Shown here one piece after another: positions 1,845 to 30,340 of a stretch of DNA of 30,340 bases; position 1 is the stretch's first letter; every line of letters begins with the position of its first letter. The notes under the pieces were generated by a model. The model saw nothing but the letters and a program-made list of their open reading frames with translations, was not told where the DNA came from and ran no database searches. Made by a program: the position numbers and the translations under genes. Where the stretch lies: sequence record BK067783.1. One strand, written 5' to 3'.

Positions 1845-1898
1845 TTACCAGAACCTTACACAATAATATTTAATAAGTACCAAATCAATTATTAAACA

Positions 1899-1985
1899 AC
1901 TGAATGGTTGACAAGCCTTCCAGGAAAATGTAGTGTTGGCGATCTAGTTATACCAACCCCATATCTAGATCGTCAATTCTTTTTA
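1899..1985 (+). ncRNA. Candidate small RNA A
   Basis: TATA TTTAATAA at 1869 (+30 = 1899); no + strand ORF; 12-bp stem 1936-1947/1965-1976 with one G-U pair; followed by a T tract. Confidence 0.5.
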
Positions 1986-2084
1986 TTTTATAATTGAAAA
2001 GCTAGCAGTTACTTCTTTCATACAATTACATTCTGGTTTACAGGATTGATGAAACATATGGATCTTACACATACAAAGCTTCAC
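1965..2084 (-). CDS. Cys/His micro-protein, 39 aa (not in track)
   Basis: GTG start; MKLCMCKIHMFHQSCKPECNCMKE; last gene of the leftward chain. Confidence 0.5.
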
Positions 2085-3082: not shown

Positions 3083-3149
3083 ATGAGGGCTTGGGGTTTC
3101 GAACCCCTTTGTCCCATCAGGGAAATGTCGCCAACACTACCGCCCTCAT
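3083..3149 (-). ncRNA. tRNA-like cloverleaf element (not a canonical tRNA)
   Basis: 8-bp closing stem AUGAGGGC/GCCCUCAU; D-like arm AGUGU-UGGCG-ACAUU; short UCCC-UGAU-GGGA arm; T-arm GGGG-UUCGAAA-CCCC. Lies in the largest gap of the operon. Confidence 0.55.
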
Positions 3150-5874: not shown

Positions 5875-6149
5875 AGCTTTCTCTCCGTTATTTCATTATC
5901 TGGATAACCATCATTTTTATATTCTTTATATGTACTACCAAAATATTCTTCGTCTACTTTAACGCCTAACCTCTGTCTAAGTAATTGAATAGGGAAATAA
6001 AATTCATTATCACCTGAGAGGTCTGACCAATAACTTTGTATAATATCTAAAAGTTCTTGATTGGTTTTAAGTTTAGTTTCATCCCATAGTTTCTGATCTC
6101 TTGTAGCCCAAAACTTCTTTCCTTCTAGACGTAATTCCTCGGAAGTCAT
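5871..6149 (-). CDS. Hypothetical protein
   Basis: ORF track; ATGA overlaps. Confidence 0.65.
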   Translation of the reverse strand: MTSEELRLEGKKFWATRDQKLWDETKLKTNQELLDIIQSYWSDLSGDNEFYFPIQLLRQRLGVKVDEEYFGSTYKEYKNDGYPDNEITERKL

Positions 6150-6301
6150 TTGGAGATCATTTCCCTTGGAGTATGAAAGACTTTATCACATAAGCAACAA
6201 TAGATAATTCCTACAACTGGAACAAATGATTTTCCGTATGCTTGACCTAACTGTGTCGCTGGTCTTTTGCATTGCGGACATTTGATTAATGACTCTGCCA
6301 T
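6146..6301 (-). CDS. Zinc-ribbon protein, first gene of the leftward operon (start revised to ATG 6301)
   Basis: CPQC...CCLC; minus-strand TATA begins at 6331, 30 nt before the ATG. Confidence 0.7.
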   Translation of the reverse strand: MAESLIKCPQCKRPATQLGQAYGKSFVPVVGIIYCCLCDKVFHTPREMISK

Positions 6302-6309
6302 AGAGAAGT

Positions 6310-6402
6310 GTACGGGAACGTACGTTATATAGTTATTGCCTTCATGCCTATTACGAATGACACCAAGCAAGTTATATAGTACGCTAACGTACGGATTAGT
6401 AC
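6310..6402. promoter_or_regulatory. Divergent promoters with palindromic operators GTACG-N4-CGTAC
   Basis: Perfect operators at 6310-6323 and 6379-6392, and a one-mismatch copy at 6389-6402. Identical GTTATATAGT TATA elements at 6324-6333 and 6371-6380. Confidence 0.8.
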
Positions 6403-7980: not shown

Positions 7981-9945
7981 ATGCCTGATGATTTTAGTAA
8001 GCCTCCACCTAATAGAACCGCAGAGCAAAACGCAGCTAAACAAGGTGCGCAATTATCAGCACAACAACAAGCACAAAGGCAACAACAGATAAAGTCACAA
8101 GATGTAACTAAAACAAGAGAGCAAGCACCCGGTGCTATTCAATCAGGATCAGAACAAGAAACTTTTGTTAGACAAGAAGCAGCTAAAGCAGAACAACAAA
8201 AAATGGTAGAAGGTGGATATGGAAAAGGTGCTACCAAAGATCAATATGCAGGAGCTAGGGAAGCAGCTCTTAAAGCTGGTTCGTTTAGTTATTCAACGCA
8301 GACACCAGCAAGCTTACCAAGTACAATAAACAAGGAAGGAAAAACAACAGTTAGAAACCAAGACCTTTACAAAGGCGCACCAATACAAATTCAAAAACCA
8401 AAAGAAGAAACCGTAACCATATCAACGCCAAAAGGATCAAGAACAGTAACAGGTGAACAAGCTCTCATATCAAGATTGAAAACAAATTATGCAAGTGCAA
8501 CACCACCGCAACAAAAACAATCATCATCAACACAAAAGACACAAGGCACACCACAATCAAATCAAATCAATTCCATTCTAAGACAGAATTTATCCAACAA
8601 AGAAGGACAAGCAGCTAGTGATATTTCAGGCAAGACAGAACCAGAAGCAGTTCCATTTTTATCTTTAAAATCTCCAATTAAAGTATCTGTTGTTCCTGTA
8701 AAAGCTGGTGAAACATTCAAGACAAGAGGAAGAGGTGCTTCTGGTGCAAAAACAGGTCAAAAGGTACAAATTATTATTCCAGAACAACAAGGAACAAAAG
8801 AAATTCCTGCTACATCAATAATAGATGTTTTACAATTTGCACCAATAGGAGGAATAGGTTTAGGTGGAGCTAGAGCAGCTTTGAGAGGAACAGGATCAAT
8901 AGTTGGTACAATAAAATCTACACCAGAAGTTTTCAAAACTGGTCAAGGATTGGAAAGAGTTTCAAGTCAAGCTATCACAGTACCAAAAGGAGTAAAGCCA
9001 CCAGAAGAAACCCTATTAGGTAAAGTTCAAGCTGCCTTTTCTAAACCACAACCTAAAGCAGAAACAAAACCACCTCAACAATTTACTAGTACCGAGATAT
9101 CATTAGGAAGAGGAACAGGTAAAGAACCAGAAGGTAAAGGTGGCGTATTATCTGGAAAGGGAACAGGTGGAGGAACTAAACCAAGTGGAGGAACACCAAA
9201 AGAAACCACGTCAAGATCAGGTCAAGTATTACAACAGATAGAAAAGGAAAAAGAACCAAAGACTACAACCAAGACTACAACCAAAACAGAACAAATCAAT
9301 AAAGCTATAACAAGAGAAAAAGAACCTACAACCACAAAAGCTAGATCCAAAGTAAAACCAGAAACAACAGAAGAACAAATCCCTATATTACTAACAAGAC
9401 CACCTAGCACTAGAACAACACCAAAAGAAACAAGACGTAATCCACTTGTTCCAGTTATACCAATATCAGTTCCAGCACCACCACAACCAAAGACAAAACC
9501 AAAGGAAGAGGAAAGATTAGGAATTGTAGATCTATTACAAACACAAAAAAATATACAAACACCAAAGCAAGGAACAGAACAAACAACAATCTTTGATACA
9601 TTACAAACTCAAGTAACAAGACAAACACCAAAGCAGACACAAGAACCAATAACATTTTCTGATCTAGTTTATACAGAAAAAGGAGGTGGAGAAACACCAA
9701 AGGCAGGCGCAGAGTTTGGAGGGCTTGGTGGAAATCCTGGATTGATAGGTAAAGTATCTAGTGGAGGATCAAAGAAAAATTATCTAGGCAATGTTCCAAT
9801 AGATGATATCATAGGAATAGGAAAACAGGAAGAATTAACTTACAAAGAATCAACAATCAAAACAAGATCACAGGCAGAAGAAAGGAGAGCTTCATCAGGT
9901 AGTTTTGTAGGATCTCCACAAAAAGGGAAGGTTAAATTCTTTTGA
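7981..9945 (+). CDS. Large low-complexity Q/T/K/P/G-rich protein, likely disordered
   Basis: 654 aa, no Cys or Trp, strongly biased composition. Confidence 0.8.
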   Translation: MPDDFSKPPPNRTAEQNAAKQGAQLSAQQQAQRQQQIKSQDVTKTREQAPGAIQSGSEQETFVRQEAAKAEQQKMVEGGYGKGATKDQYAGAREAALKAGSFSYSTQTPASLPSTINKEGKTTVRNQDLYKGAPIQIQKPKEETVTISTPKGSRTVTGEQALISRLKTNYASATPPQQKQSSSTQKTQGTPQSNQINSILRQNLSNKEGQAASDISGKTEPEAVPFLSLKSPIKVSVVPVKAGETFKTRGRGASGAKTGQKVQIIIPEQQGTKEIPATSIIDVLQFAPIGGIGLGGARAALRGTGSIVGTIKSTPEVFKTGQGLERVSSQAITVPKGVKPPEETLLGKVQAAFSKPQPKAETKPPQQFTSTEISLGRGTGKEPEGKGGVLSGKGTGGGTKPSGGTPKETTSRSGQVLQQIEKEKEPKTTTKTTTKTEQINKAITREKEPTTTKARSKVKPETTEEQIPILLTRPPSTRTTPKETRRNPLVPVIPISVPAPPQPKTKPKEEERLGIVDLLQTQKNIQTPKQGTEQTTIFDTLQTQVTRQTPKQTQEPITFSDLVYTEKGGGETPKAGAEFGGLGGNPGLIGKVSSGGSKKNYLGNVPIDDIIGIGKQEELTYKESTIKTRSQAEERRASSGSFVGSPQKGKVKFF

Positions 9946-11589: not shown

Positions 11590-11633
11590 ACACTAGACAA
11601 ATATTTAATTATTAGGTATTCTAACGTAGAATT

Positions 11634-11769
11634 AACCAACCATTGAAATTACTGGTAAGAGTGATCCCCCTCACTTTTACCAGTAGTTGTTTGTAACATT
11701 TCATAACACAATAATTCTTTTATAGCTCAATGTTTTAACAGTCTTTACAAATGAAGGGGGAAAATAACT
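11634..11769 (+). promoter_or_regulatory. Structured 5' leader (D) with 18-bp hairpin and loop-to-SD pseudoknot
   Basis: TATA at 11604 (+30 = 11634); stem 11647-11664/11671-11688 with two G-U pairs; loop TCCCCC complementary to GGGGGA at 11756-11761 before the TTG start. Confidence 0.6.
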
Positions 11770-14582: not shown

Positions 14583-15085
14583 TGACATCACACCTTAATG
14601 GAGATGAAATAAAAAGAATTAGAACAGAGCTTAGAGAAAAGCATGGCGAAGTATGTACTAGATGTAGTAAGACTCCAAGAGATCTAAATGTACCTAATCT
14701 AGAATGTCATGAAGTAAAATATGAAAGACCTTTGAGAATAGAAAACTTTGCTTTTCTATGTCATGGATGTAATAGACTAAAAGAACTAAGAAAAAATGAA
14801 ATAATGAATAGAGAGCTATCTGCTTCACACAAGAAAAATATTGAATCAAAACCATTATTTGAAAGATGGTTAAGAACCACTTTACAAGAAAATAATCATC
14901 ATTATCTAATGAGTGAAGTAATAGCTAGCGGATCATATGTATCTGATTGTAACGTAATGACGGTTAAAAGATGGTTAGAATCTCTCACTTCACGAGCTGC
15001 ACCTTATTGCATAGCACCTAATGAGTATGGTCGTATGCATGTATGGGAAAGAGAATTTGTACCATCAAAAGAAGATCTAATTTAA
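14582..15085 (+). CDS. HNH endonuclease domain fused to a C-terminal winged-helix-like domain
   Basis: CTRC...ECHE...IEN...LCHGCN. C-terminal helical region (MTVKRWLESLTS) is wHTH-like by inference. Confidence 0.7.
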   Translation: MTSHLNGDEIKRIRTELREKHGEVCTRCSKTPRDLNVPNLECHEVKYERPLRIENFAFLCHGCNRLKELRKNEIMNRELSASHKKNIESKPLFERWLRTTLQENNHHYLMSEVIASGSYVSDCNVMTVKRWLESLTSRAAPYCIAPNEYGRMHVWEREFVPSKEDLI

Positions 15086-15248
15086 AAAGTCGAGTAGAAT
15101 CTACTCGATTGTGTGTGTACACCTACACCTTTTGTTCCATTCCTAGACAAGAAACTAAATATTTCCACTAGGTAGAGTAGAATTTAAAAAATCGAGTAGA
15201 TTACATTCGATTGTGTGTGTATGTGTGTGTTTAAAAAAAGCACACACA
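15079..15248. repeat. Two 41-bp direct repeats with dyad, TG tracts and hairpin (candidate origin or tandem promoters)
   Basis: 15079-15119 vs 15181-15221 are 36/41 identical; perfect dyad TCGAGTAGA-A-TCTACTCGA at 15090-15108; hairpin 15222-15230/15240-15248. Confidence 0.85.
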
Positions 15249-15350
15249 GACAAAAGAGTACGGTAACAATTACAGTACAATATAAAGATACACAAATGTT
15301 TCCAGTCTAGGCATGAAAACTTTAAAGCATATCAGATACAAAATTATATC

Positions 15351-15491
15351 ATGGATAATTGTTACATATGTAATGACCAGGCACATCTAAAATGTAATGT
15401 ATGTAATAGTAAAGTATGCAAAGAACATTACTTGTTTCATGGAACAAAGTGTATCGTTTATACGACTACAAAATTTGAACGCACCAGGTAA
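15351..15491 (+). CDS. Zinc-finger micro-protein, 46 aa (not in track)
   Basis: CYIC...CNVC...CKEH; TATA at 15321, 30 nt upstream. Confidence 0.7.
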   Translation: MDNCYICNDQAHLKCNVCNSKVCKEHYLFHGTKCIVYTTTKFERTR

Positions 15492-21598: not shown

Positions 21599-21650
21599 TA
21601 TCAAATCTTTTTTTTAAAAGTTTAAATTTAAGGAATTAATTATAGTTATC

Positions 21651-21715
21651 ACTGGTTGGTTGATACGTCAACCTTCTGAGCAAAGGAACTAAACCAACCG
21701 AGCTATTTCTTCTTT
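21651..21715 (+). ncRNA. Candidate small RNA C
   Basis: AAAAG + TTTAAATT at 21616-21628 (+30 = 21651); alternative stems; T-rich end; downstream ORF has its own TATA at 21745. Confidence 0.5.
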
Positions 21716-21773
21716 ATGATGAAATTTAATGAAAAGACACAACCTTAAATAATACAGAATGTAAAATTGAAAC

Positions 21774-28365: not shown

Positions 28366-28776
28366 ATGGAAATTTCTATTCTTGAATATATTGTGTACGC
28401 TTTAATTGGATATTCTTCTTTCGCTGTTCTAATTGTTTCAGCTGTTAAAGAAATTCCAGATAGTAGAGTCTTATCTTTAGTTAGAGTAATTTATTTATTT
28501 CCCGGTATCATAGCATTAATGATTCTTGCAAGCTCTGGAATAAACATAGATGTAAATACAGTAACAACAAACAACTTAATCAAATCCATAAACACTACAC
28601 AAACATGGACAGAAGCTACGACACAATCAAATACTATCATACTTCAAAATCCAGTATGGTCAATGTTCCATTGGTTGTTAGCTATTACTCTAATATTCTA
28701 TATGATAAAACAAATCTTGAACCTGTTAACAAAAGCACCAGCTCAGGGCGTAAGGGAAGATAATGAAGTCGAATGA
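28366..28776 (+). CDS. Three-TM putative structural protein
   Basis: Three hydrophobic segments. Confidence 0.75.
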   Translation: MEISILEYIVYALIGYSSFAVLIVSAVKEIPDSRVLSLVRVIYLFPGIIALMILASSGINIDVNTVTTNNLIKSINTTQTWTEATTQSNTIILQNPVWSMFHWLLAITLIFYMIKQILNLLTKAPAQGVREDNEVE

Positions 28777-30340
28777 TAAGAAGAACTTACCTTCTAATCC
28801 TAATAGTTTTTATATCATCTATCTACATTTCATCAGCTAACGCACAATTCGCAATTCAACCACCAACCGTTAACATACCACCAACAAATGCGTACAATCA
28901 ATTTAATGTAAGCAATGCTACCATTTCAGCAAAGAACTTTATTGCTTCTGTTAATATAGTAGGAAAGAATGGTTTAGGTGTAACAGGTTCTAACAGTTCT
29001 CAAACAATATATCTAACAGCTCCTAATCCATCATCAGGATTACCAACTACTTATTGTCCTGCTAACTTTGGATTTGTTTCTTATAACGCAACGACAAATA
29101 TTCTAGCTTGTGCATTGTTAAATCAAACTGGATCTGGTTCTGGTGTAACATCATTAAATAGTTTGACAGGTGCTTTAACAATAGCCAAAGGAACAAACAT
29201 CAATTCCATAACCGCAGCTGGTAATACTATAACCATAAACGCAGCTGGTTGGCAAAACAATACGGGTTCTAATTTAGGTACAAGTGGTTCTGGTGTCTTT
29301 GCTTCAATGAGTGGATCAATATTGCAATTCTTAAAACTAATATCATCAAATTCCTTTCTAAGTATAACAACAAACTCCACCAATGTTATATTTAATATTC
29401 CAAGTATTGTAACAAAATTAATTGCTGGTACTGGAATATCGGTAAATCAAACATCAGGAAATATTTTAGTAACTAATACGGGTGTGACAAAATTAGCTGC
29501 AACATCACCAGTTGTAGTTAACGCATCAACTGGTCAAGTAAATGTTTCTTGCCCTACTTGTTCAACTACAACAGGAACTATAACAGGAAGTGCAAACGCT
29601 GGTAAAGCTACTGGTTCAGTTGGTGTATTATCAACACCTACAACTACGTTAATCAAAGGCAGAAACATGACAGGTACTAGTCCTATTGTAGTTACAAAAA
29701 CAAATGATACAGATATAGCTATATCATGTCCAACATGTTCTAGTACAACTGGAACAATCACTGGTGGATCTAATATCGGTACTTCTGGTTTTGGTTTCTT
29801 CAAGAACAGTACAAATAATAATATTAATCTAAGAAACTTAACTACTTCAAGATCTGATCTATTTACAATAACTCAATCTTCTAATAATGTTAATCTAGCT
29901 TCTAGTTTCAAATCTAATACTATTGCATGTACGAATCAATTCATTTCTGCATTTACAAATTCAACTGGAATTTATACATGTGCAACACCCACTAATACAG
30001 CTCAAGTAGTAAGCGCAGACAATGGAGTAAGTTTAATTAGTTCACAATTTAATGCAACAGAAACAAAATTAAAATCATTACGTAATTCAACAGCTTATGT
30101 ATTATGGAATCATAATACAACATCAATTACACCTAGCTTCCAGTTTAAAATTAATACAAAGGCTTGTACAAACAATCAATTTATATCAGCAATATCAAAC
30201 AGTTCAGATTCTACATGTAATAAAATGTTACTTAATGCAGTAAGTAAAACTAATTCTTATACTGTTGCATCTACAGATGATATTATATTAGTAAATGCAA
30301 CAGGAGGTAACTATACTATTACTATTCCTACTATAGCAAC
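28773..30340 (+). CDS. N-terminal part of the ~1012-aa adhesin (not in track; continues at 1..1471)
   Basis: Translated by hand with no stop. ATGA overlap; signal peptide ending SANA; about 20 N-x-S/T sequons; internal repeats. Confidence 0.85.
   Translation, partial: MIRRTYLLILIVFISSIYISSANAQFAIQPPTVNIPPTNAYNQFNVSNATISAKNFIASVNIVGKNGLGVTGSNSSQTIYLTAPNPSSGLPTTYCPANFGFVSYNATTNILACALLNQTGSGSGVTSLNSLTGALTIAKGTNINSITAAGNTITINAAGWQNNTGSNLGTSGSGVFASMSGSILQFLKLISSNSFLSITTNSTNVIFNIPSIVTKLIAGTGISVNQTSGNILVTNTGVTKLAATSPVVVNASTGQVNVSCPTCSTTTGTITGSANAGKATGSVGVLSTPTTTLIKGRNMTGTSPIVVTKTNDTDIAISCPTCSSTTGTITGGSNIGTSGFGFFKNSTNNNINLRNLTTSRSDLFTITQSSNNVNLASSFKSNTIACTNQFISAFTNSTGIYTCATPTNTAQVVSADNGVSLISSQFNATETKLKSLRNSTAYVLWNHNTTSITPSFQFKINTKACTNNQFISAISNSSDSTCNKMLLNAVSKTNSYTVASTDDIILVNATGGNYTITIPTIA

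Follow-up and report, generated by a model that had tools for sequence, protein, structure and literature searches.

Trans-encoded sRNAs from archaeal intergenic regions have been catalogued for Methanosarcina, Haloferax and Sulfolobus (review PMC3432209). The two elements analyzed here, RNA A and RNA C, resemble these sRNAs in that they are predicted to be 50-100 nt long, intergenic, non-coding and stably structured, to lie behind a TATA-type promoter and to end in an oligo-U stretch; they differ from them in being virus-encoded, in having been predicted from sequence alone and in being unrelated, both by sequence and by Rfam, to all described sRNAs. An Rfam search, which the first-pass annotation of this DNA had suggested as a check, gave 0 matches at gathering scores for RNA A, RNA C and their orthologues, and permissive scans of both loci and the orthologues returned only chance-level matches, inconsistent among orthologues and far below gathering. 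An ARAGORN search for tRNA and tmRNA yielded 0 genes. C/D box sRNAs are similar to RNA C in size and in their paired 5′ and 3′ ends; this identity was rejected, as the C box (RUGAUGA) and the D box (CUGA) are absent from the aligned orthologues, and the C/D matches in Rfam were sub-threshold and located outside the element.

A second comparison concerns convergent cis-antisense RNAs: The OOP RNA of phage lambda opposes the 3′ end of cII, and SR4/bsrG and RatA/txpA represent antitoxin RNAs of this type. RNA A is likewise short, has its own predicted promoter, ends in a hairpin followed by a U-tract, and would overlap with the 3′ terminus of a conserved small ORF on the opposite, convergent strand (1983-2084). 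Unlike in these systems, the overlap comprises only the last codons and the stop of the ORF, and the small protein is Cys-rich and not the hydrophobic peptide typical of type I toxins; the likeness is an analogy of layout only. A third comparison is with terminators and attenuators. Archaeal termination depends on oligo-T and does not require a hairpin. RNA A shares with such elements a strong hairpin directly followed by T5/T4, and RNA C shares with them two mutually exclusive helices, the longer of which reaches a U-rich tract. Both differ from them in that each is preceded by its own TATA-like box, and RNA A also in a 14-nt stretch of its loop region that is invariant.

Viruses of ammonia-oxidising archaea are known almost solely through metagenomes, and functions are unassigned for most of their genes. 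The window, that is the whole stretch of DNA analyzed here (30,340 bp), represents the complete genome of NTT2, a rhizosphere isolate of Nitrosopumilaceae spindle-shaped virus (GenBank BK067783; IMG/VR contig 3300006903_000010); BK067791 is the same sequence, rotated and reverse-complemented. The record is a permuted circle, since ORF67 crosses the record end into ORF1. NTT2 is classified in the genus Terrafusivirus of the family Nipumfusiviridae (PMC12451623), and its host group is the soil ammonia-oxidising archaea. Neither promoters and terminators nor intergenic regions and non-coding RNAs are mentioned in the paper that describes the genome (PMC10866085).

With an ATPase identity of 32-37%, the relatives published so far stand at some distance from NTT2, and only NTM1 (L003) is collinear with it; its syntenic gaps of 66 nt and 26 nt are too short for either RNA, so that RNA A and RNA C are both absent from NTM1. 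In IMG/VR the NTT2 clade consists of NTT2 and NTM1 only, and DNA-pattern searches there with the small-ORF block, RNA C and RNA A matched solely NTT2 itself. No provirus was found in GTDB genomes, and a scan of JGI metagenomes gave short contigs only, which end just before RNA C. Usable orthologues were obtained solely via protein look-ups: Homologues of ORF54 (58-98% identity) led to contigs L020-L026 and L030-L033, and a homologue of ORF2 (72% identity) led to contig L027.

The gene promoters of NTT2 follow the consensus aACCTTAAATAgt, with a TATA element that begins 29-34 nt upstream of leaderless ATGs; the unannotated leaderless ORFs that the first-pass annotation had listed at 15351 (plus strand) and 6301 (minus strand) are indeed present. 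It had further drawn attention to two TATA-like elements without an ORF, TTTAATAA from 1869 and TTTAAATT from 21621, each followed by a similar 13-mer, and this observation holds in every detail: ACTGAATGGTTGA at 1899-1911 and ACTGGTTGGTTGA at 21651-21663 are identical in 11/13 positions, and each begins exactly 30 nt past the first T of its box. The absence of a conserved ORF downstream of both boxes was likewise borne out. Micro-ORFs that start within the motif are not kept in L027 (ATG at 1904, 9 aa) or in the RNA C orthologues (TTG at 21656, 7 aa), a TTG ORF at 1908-1997 (29 aa) is not kept in orthologues either, and three-frame translations of all orthologues of RNA A and RNA C have no ORF in common; the idea that the motif encodes short peptides with an M-V-D beginning was rejected for lack of conservation. 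With the gene-promoter matrix both boxes score <8, and the RNA A box is without the ACC and AGT flanks typical of gene promoters. In terms of this matrix, the two boxes may constitute a variant promoter type or weaker promoters.

The shared 13-mer is the basis of one possible reading, put forward in the first-pass annotation: RNA A and RNA C would be a paralogous family of virus-encoded sRNAs, in which the single-stranded, conserved 5′ motif ACUGnnUGGUUGA acts as a target-pairing seed. Within the NTT2 window the exact motif pattern occurs at no site other than 1899 and 21651; with ≤1 mismatch there are 3 matches, compared with 0.66 expected, and 3/100 shuffles attain 3. Among the 55 TTTAAWWW sites on both strands, which form 1,485 pairs, A and C are the sole pair with more than 9/13 identities between the 13-mers at +30. 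According to our own binomial estimate, the chance of the A/C match is ~0.05 genome-wide and lower among orphan boxes. Pure chance is an improbable source of the match, with the reservation that the pattern was set post hoc. The seed reading also gains from a downstream CCAACC that is able to pair with GGUUG in both RNAs and from the retention of GGTTG in the orthologue of A and the majority of those of C. Comparison with the orthologues nevertheless makes it quite unlikely, as set out below. We consider it probable instead that the Terrafusivirus genome harbors, in RNA A and RNA C, two structured non-coding RNA elements that are distinct from each other and not homologous: As judged from the aligned sequences, they are conserved in place, pair with compensatory changes and do not code for protein.

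The RNA C locus contains the following features:
21608-21615, plus strand: T8 tract that terminates the ORF47-51 operon, immediately ahead of the RNA C cassette
21621-21628, plus strand: putative TATA box TTTAAATT of RNA C, kept as TTTAAATT or CTTTATTT in L021, L024 and L025/L030
21651-21715, plus strand: RNA C, ~60 nt, matched by covariance model R1
21651-21663, plus strand: 13-mer ACTGGTTGGTTGA, which supplies the 5′ strand of P1 and the 5′ arm of P2
21654-21657(59) with 21696(94)-21699, plus outer pairs, plus strand: helix P1, 7 pairs, 85% paired
21658-21663 with 21668-21673, plus strand: helix P2, 6 pairs, 100% paired
21674-21693, plus strand: A-rich joining region, an unpaired stretch
21703-21715, plus strand: U-rich end CTATTTCTTCTTT, with no run of 5 T
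21742-21753, plus strand: consensus promoter ACCTTAAATAAT of ORF52 itself, directly after RNA C; score 11.8, among the top gene promoters

Four contigs of related soil viruses, and one further contig that is cut, contain a cassette of TATA box, ~60-nt RNA and U-rich end, flanked by the terminator of ORF51 and the promoter of ORF52; it lies between ORF51-like and ORF52-like genes in L021, L024 and L025/L030, and L022 holds a part of it at the contig end. The order is always the T-tract of the upstream operon, TATA, a CA(C/G)T start, a body of ~60 nt, a (G/C)CAACC..CTATTT end and the ORF52 promoter, and the spacing from TATA to start equals that in NTT2 save for one extra base in the three orthologues. 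In the NTM1-type relatives (L003, L013, L026, L031), the T-tract is directly followed by the ORF52 promoter. Since these genomes are without the whole cassette, TATA, RNA and U-tract must have been gained or lost as a block. The T8 tract is kept in the RNA C orthologues as well as in relatives without RNA C, and the ORF52 promoter also persists where RNA C is missing.

Hairpin P2, which directly follows the 5′ end, differs in sequence in each orthologue (GGUUGA/UCAACC, GCAUUG/CAAUGC, GCCUCA/UGAGGC, GGUCUA/UAGACC). RNAalifold recovers this helix exactly, with double-sided changes in 5/6 pairs, and its covariation score is attained by 0/500 shuffles of the model-based alignment of four sequences; in a control with slid partners, pairing in RNA C falls from 92% to 26-53%. 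P1 joins a 5′ GGUUG(G/C) to a 3′ (C/G)CAACC, appears in the minimum-energy folds of all four orthologues and switches one pair from G-C to C-G between NTT2 and L021/L024. The folds of the four orthologues, with their ends paired, have z-scores of -1.4 to -2.9; taken alone, NTT2 RNA C folds no more stably than its shuffled versions (z = -0.85 to -1.4). The pairing of TTGA with a downstream TCAA, which had been postulated for both RNAs, is thus genuine in RNA C, where it is part of hairpin P2 (GGUUGA/UCAACC). The end of RNA C, for which a T tract had been postulated, is U-rich (CTATTTCTTCTTT): CTATTT is conserved, the T runs measure 3-5 depending on the orthologue, and a run of 5 T is absent in NTT2, so that read-through into ORF52 is possible.

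The covariance model that had been proposed as a check was built on RNA C (R1) and recovers four orthologues and the partial L022, with bit scores of 64.6 in the NTT2 window, 76.4 in L021, 84.6 in L024 and 82.3 in L030. Across ~435 kb of related loci R1 detected nothing beyond these; a marginal match in L017 (E = 0.55) was rejected, as it lies at an ORF 3′ end and reflects T-tract similarity only. RNA C is the better small-RNA candidate of the two and a promising one for a new family of small-RNA genes limited to a Terrafusivirus subclade. RNA C can also form an alternative long helix, in which the P2 5′ arm pairs with the stretch just before the P1 3′ strand and which excludes P1 and P2; four of its pairs show double-sided, compensated changes among the four sequences. 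This hints at a two-state RNA, a lead and not a result at the present number of four sequences.

These properties of RNA C bear on the main rival reading, that both elements act solely in cis, as parts of mRNAs, and are not free-standing sRNAs: RNA A would terminate the late operon ORF64-ORF2 or stabilise its 3′ end and act as a barrier against the minus-strand operon that converges on it, and RNA C would be a leader or attenuator of ORF52-53. Mutually exclusive helices with compensated changes, the longer of which abuts the U-tract, are indeed reminiscent of an attenuator, the U-rich end of RNA C is weak in NTT2, and both TATA boxes deviate from the gene-promoter consensus. A role as leader is hard to reconcile, however, with the gene that it would control, as ORF52 is leaderless and has its own strong consensus promoter between RNA C and the ATG, which is kept in genomes without RNA C; nor does it fit the finding that RNA C and its own TATA box are gained or lost jointly, as one block. 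We regard this reading as possible yet clearly the less probable one, and its other half is to be weighed at the RNA A locus, which contains the following features:
1865-1877, plus strand: promoter-like box AATATTTAATAAG of RNA A, with TATA TTTAATAA at 1869-1876; the identical 13-mer is found in L027
1899-1911, plus strand: 13-mer ACTGAATGGTTGA, the predicted start of RNA A; it reads ACCCAAAGGTTGC in L027
1936-1976, plus strand: RNA A hairpin of 12 bp (1936-1947/1965-1976) and 3 inner pairs (1949-1951/1961-1963)
1951-1964, plus strand: invariant 14-nt stretch TACCAACCCCATAT of apical loop and inner pairs, identical in L027
1977-1989, plus strand: T-tract TTCTTTTTATTTT, at which RNA A and the ORF64-ORF2 operon are predicted to end
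1983-2084, minus strand: unannotated conserved small ORF, 33 aa, Cys-rich, with its stop codon within the RNA A T-tract

The evidence on RNA A derives from one orthologue, L027. The spacing from box to start is identical there and the flanks differ: L027 lacks the 20-22 nt that separate the box from the ORF2 stop in NTT2. It also lacks ~20 nt following the 13-mer (about 1912-1931), and the 5′ part of RNA A is poorly conserved. The 12-bp stem described in the first-pass annotation is real (MFE -24.4 to -27.5 kcal/mol, z = -3.9 to -4.2), and z-scores of the hairpin range from -3.9 to -4.9 across NTT2 and L027. Between these two sequences the stem shows two double-sided pair changes (C-G to U-A and A-U to G-C) and an additional change from G-U to G-C, and it is 100% paired in both; because only a single orthologue is available, the covariation is not statistically significant (143/500 shuffles attain the observed values, n = 2 sequences). 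The fold is stronger on the plus strand than on the minus strand (-17.7 vs -13.7 kcal/mol), and the G-U pairs favor the plus strand. The T tract noted at the end of RNA A is present, as T5 followed by T4 (1980-1989), and it differs in one base between NTT2 and L027. The TTGA/TCAA pairing is not favored in RNA A, where TCAA instead forms the base of the long hairpin: A U-to-C change in TCAA strengthens the pairing with the hairpin 5′ arm and would break the pairing with the motif. Contig L030 (24.5 kb) represents a more distant relative; inspection by eye of the two junctions read in it revealed nothing that resembles RNA A. A 13-mer that RNA A has in common with a tRNA-T-arm-like piece at 3128-3140 (minus strand) was rejected and is treated as a chance match, because it is not kept in L027 and matches no tRNA model.

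From the loop of RNA A onward, ~130 nt of DNA show only a handful of differences between NTT2 and L027. The conservation past the loop is due to the unannotated 33-aa Cys-rich ORF on the minus strand, which uses GTG as its start codon, carries an SD-like GAGAGGG, forms the final gene of the ORF18-ORF3 operon and retains 94% amino acid identity between NTT2 and L027, compared with 71% for the neighboring ORF2 and 34% for ORF1. The ORF and the RNA A hairpin are conserved together as a single block. Its product is Cys-rich and polar; a type I toxin identity was rejected for want of a hydrophobic helix. Since this ORF closes the minus-strand operon, the RNA A hairpin stands where two operons converge, the late operon on the plus strand and a long operon on the minus strand, and the T-tract (1977-1989) overlaps the last codons and the stop of the ORF, with transcript ends that are predicted only.

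A cis-acting role of RNA A gains weight from the lack of any run of ≥5 T from the ORF2 stop (1844) to 1980: The ORF2 mRNA must traverse the hairpin and also terminate at the RNA A hairpin and T-tract. Conversely, a mere terminator does not explain why the TATA-like 13-mer is conserved while its flanks vary, and only four intergenic runs of ≥5 T exist on the plus strand, one of which is the RNA A T-tract. The other terminator T-tracts of NTT2 are without a hairpin; the RNA A hairpin is therefore not a generic terminator feature. RNA A may be a separate RNA of ~85 nt, the 3′ end of the late mRNA, or both; it is a conserved structured element with uncertain status as a transcript.

With both loci described, the seed reading can be judged. 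The motif is lost in the orthologues of A and of C, an outcome that the first-pass annotation itself had named as speaking against its proposal: The A orthologue reads ACCCAAAGGTTGC, the C orthologues contain AGTGGTTGCC and other non-kept forms, with AGTAGTTGCATTG, AGTGGTTGCCTCA and AGTGGGTGGTCTA at the motif position, and in six distant genomes (L003-L008) the 13-mer was not found at a promoter. With this loss among related viruses, the reading as a seed family fails. All that the A and C orthologues have in common are GGTTG-like letters, at an offset of +4 in the C orthologues and +8 in A. Moreover, the motif of RNA C is not single-stranded, as a seed had been supposed to be: Its first half is the 5′ strand of the closing helix P1, and the remaining half (GGTTGA) supplies the 5′ arm of P2, a freely changing stem with a wholly different sequence in the orthologues. 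A common origin of the two RNAs finds no support in the covariance model either, since R1 retrieves the C orthologues with E = 1e-12 to 1e-17 and does not match 1899-1990 (plus strand) at E ≤10. The promoter boxes differ (AATATTTAATAAG vs AAAGTTTAAATTT), and so do the architectures, with a 5′ tail and a long hairpin in A vs paired ends and a small inner hairpin in C. A search for trans targets by complementarity gave none that was convincing, the longest exact matches being same-sense repeats or at chance level, and a target complementary to the motif was found solely at an intergenic site ‘B’. Of the original sRNA proposal, it stands that both loci behave like structured non-coding units with a putative promoter and terminator; paralogy and seed do not stand.

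As far as the aligned sequences tell, the shared 13-mer is a trait of the NTT2 genome alone and not a conserved seed. GGTTGGTTG is duplicated in NTT2 RNA C, and A aligns with the copy that forms the P2 5′ arm, the most variable part of RNA C. The preferred explanation by two separate elements leaves the 11/13 match at an equal offset unaccounted for. Such a match could also originate at the level of DNA, with the motif as an operator for a viral or host DNA-binding protein over the start of a few special promoters (A, C and an inverted B at 11634-11646), or with the hairpins as replication DNA structures. The motif or its complement is found at +30 of three orphan TATA-like boxes, and ACCAACC is enriched in intergenic DNA, which holds 4/7 copies and makes up 11.6% of the genome. 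In the orthologues, however, the motif is lost and pairing persists via compensatory changes, which is the signature of a nucleic-acid structure and not of a sequence recognized by a protein; the loops of the RNA C hairpins are not conserved, so that a nick site or origin loop is unlikely; and the G-U pairs favor an RNA of the plus strand. We therefore consider a DNA-level role highly improbable.

Under the preferred reading of two separate RNA elements, transcription, RNA ends and a regulatory role would take the following form. The TATA-like boxes 30 nt upstream are conserved in silico in L021, L024 and L025 for RNA C and in L027 for RNA A. RNA C would be a cassette with its own TATA, a start near 21651, ends that pair (GGUUGG with CCAACC), P2, an A-rich stretch and a U-rich end. 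In one virus subclade this cassette was presumably inserted past the terminator of ORF51 and ahead of the ORF52 promoter. RNA C would be made as a discrete, end-protected RNA of ~60 nt, might regulate via its A-rich internal region or by binding a protein, and may alternate between two folds. The box 30 nt upstream of 1899 suggests an own RNA of ~85-90 nt for RNA A, whose hairpin and T-tract would also end the ORF2 mRNA. If made from the 1869 box, an RNA would lie antisense to the 3′ terminus of the minus-strand operon and to its last gene, the 33-aa ORF, and RNA A might thereby control the 3′ end or the stability of the converging transcripts. A more ambitious proposal, which we deem unlikely, would make RNA C a bistable riboregulator (P1 and P2 vs the long rod) and the first described ncRNA family of viruses of ammonia-oxidising archaea; the identity of the A and C 5′ ends would then reflect recognition of a common partner, e.g., a viral protein or the complementary AACCAACCAUU with which the ‘B’ leader begins (11634-11646), joining three transcription units into a small regulatory circuit.

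A striking motif match within one genome can mislead: Here, comparison with orthologues reveals strands of helices and not a seed. The practical impact of the two elements is modest pending a demonstrated expression and target. For the biology of these viruses, the analysis contributes several small genes absent from the annotation and a promoter consensus (aACCTTAAATAgt, located about 30 nt ahead of leaderless ATGs), and the covarying ~60-nt RNA cassette as well as the unit of hairpin and small ORF represent concrete, testable candidate regulatory elements for the Nipumfusiviridae.

The ORF18-ORF3 operon ends in a gene encoded next to RNA A, the structured element at ~1899-1989 on the + strand in which a hairpin is followed by a T-tract:

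1983-2084, - strand: unannotated, Cys-rich small ORF of 33 aa (MKLCMCKIHMFHQSCKPECNCMKEVTASFSIIK)

The stop codon of this ORF is contained in the T-tract 3′ of the RNA A hairpin. Its counterpart in L027, the one contig with an RNA A orthologue, is 94% identical, and no homologues were found in the remaining related loci examined. At the DNA level, the block carrying the small ORF shows only a handful of differences between the window and L027; the neighbouring genes are 34-71% identical. The leaderless ORFs with TATA elements that the first-pass annotation had placed at 15351 and 6301 are likewise both present and unannotated:

15351-15491, + strand: CxxC-rich small ORF of 46 aa, start at 15351, TATA ~30 nt upstream
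6146-6370, - strand: small ORF containing CxxC, in-frame ATG near 6301, TATA ~30 nt upstream

The window also holds a further TATA-like box and, scattered over its + strand, seven copies of ACCAACC, four of which are intergenic (intergenic DNA makes up 11.6% of the genome):

11604-11725, + strand: third orphan TATA-like box with hairpin unit
1952, 11635, 21693 and 22060, + strand: intergenic copies of ACCAACC

The third box, AATATTTAATTA, resembles that of RNA A, and the sequence at its +30, AACCAACCATTGA, is complementary to the GGTTGG-type motif, i.e., the 13-mer found at +30 of the boxes of RNA A and RNA C. Between AACCAACCATTGA on its 5′ side and TTCTTTTAT on its 3′ side lies the strongest hairpin of the genome (18 bp, 11647-11688, z = -6.5). 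Because ORF29, downstream of this hairpin, has a Shine–Dalgarno sequence and a TTG start and is without a TATA of its own, the unit is probably the 5′ leader of ORF29 and not an sRNA. In the related soil-virus contigs carrying RNA C (21651-21715, + strand), the counterpart of its ACCAACC reads GCAACC, GCAAAC or ACAACC. The RNA C 14-mer AGGAACTAAACCAA (21684-21697) is repeated in the same sense within ORF25 (9171-9184), whose AT skew is very strong (0.39-0.46): The match is probably due to chance in a compositionally biased gene.

The record itself, BK067783 (NTT2), is the same 30,340-bp sequence as BK067791 (NTT1, the ICTV exemplar), rotated and reverse-complemented. ORF67 (28773-30340>) runs on into ORF1 (2-1471) over the record ends, and linearisation therefore splits this large gene. 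Among GTDB genomes, the major capsid protein has a single match (44% identity) on CBDBJL010000012.1. This contig of 5 kb forms part of an ‘Alphaproteobacteria’ MAG and is likely a viral contig placed in the wrong bin.

Another strongly folding element lies within genes:

3086-3145, - strand: strongly folding stretch within ORF7/ORF8

Here, GGGGTTCGAAACCCC resembles a tRNA T-arm and the ends are acceptor-like; neither ARAGORN nor Rfam returned a tRNA match. The stretch could be the remnant of a tRNA-derived attachment site. One 13-mer within it also occurs in RNA A, a match not kept in L027. Finally, the widest gap separating annotated genes harbours a direct repeat whose two 41-nt copies (15079-15119 and 15181-15221) are 88% identical. 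In each of them, a palindrome (TCGAGTAGA..TCGA) precedes a (TG)n run, and each adjoins a hairpin (15218-15252). The region at 15079-15252 is a candidate replication-origin or regulator-binding region.
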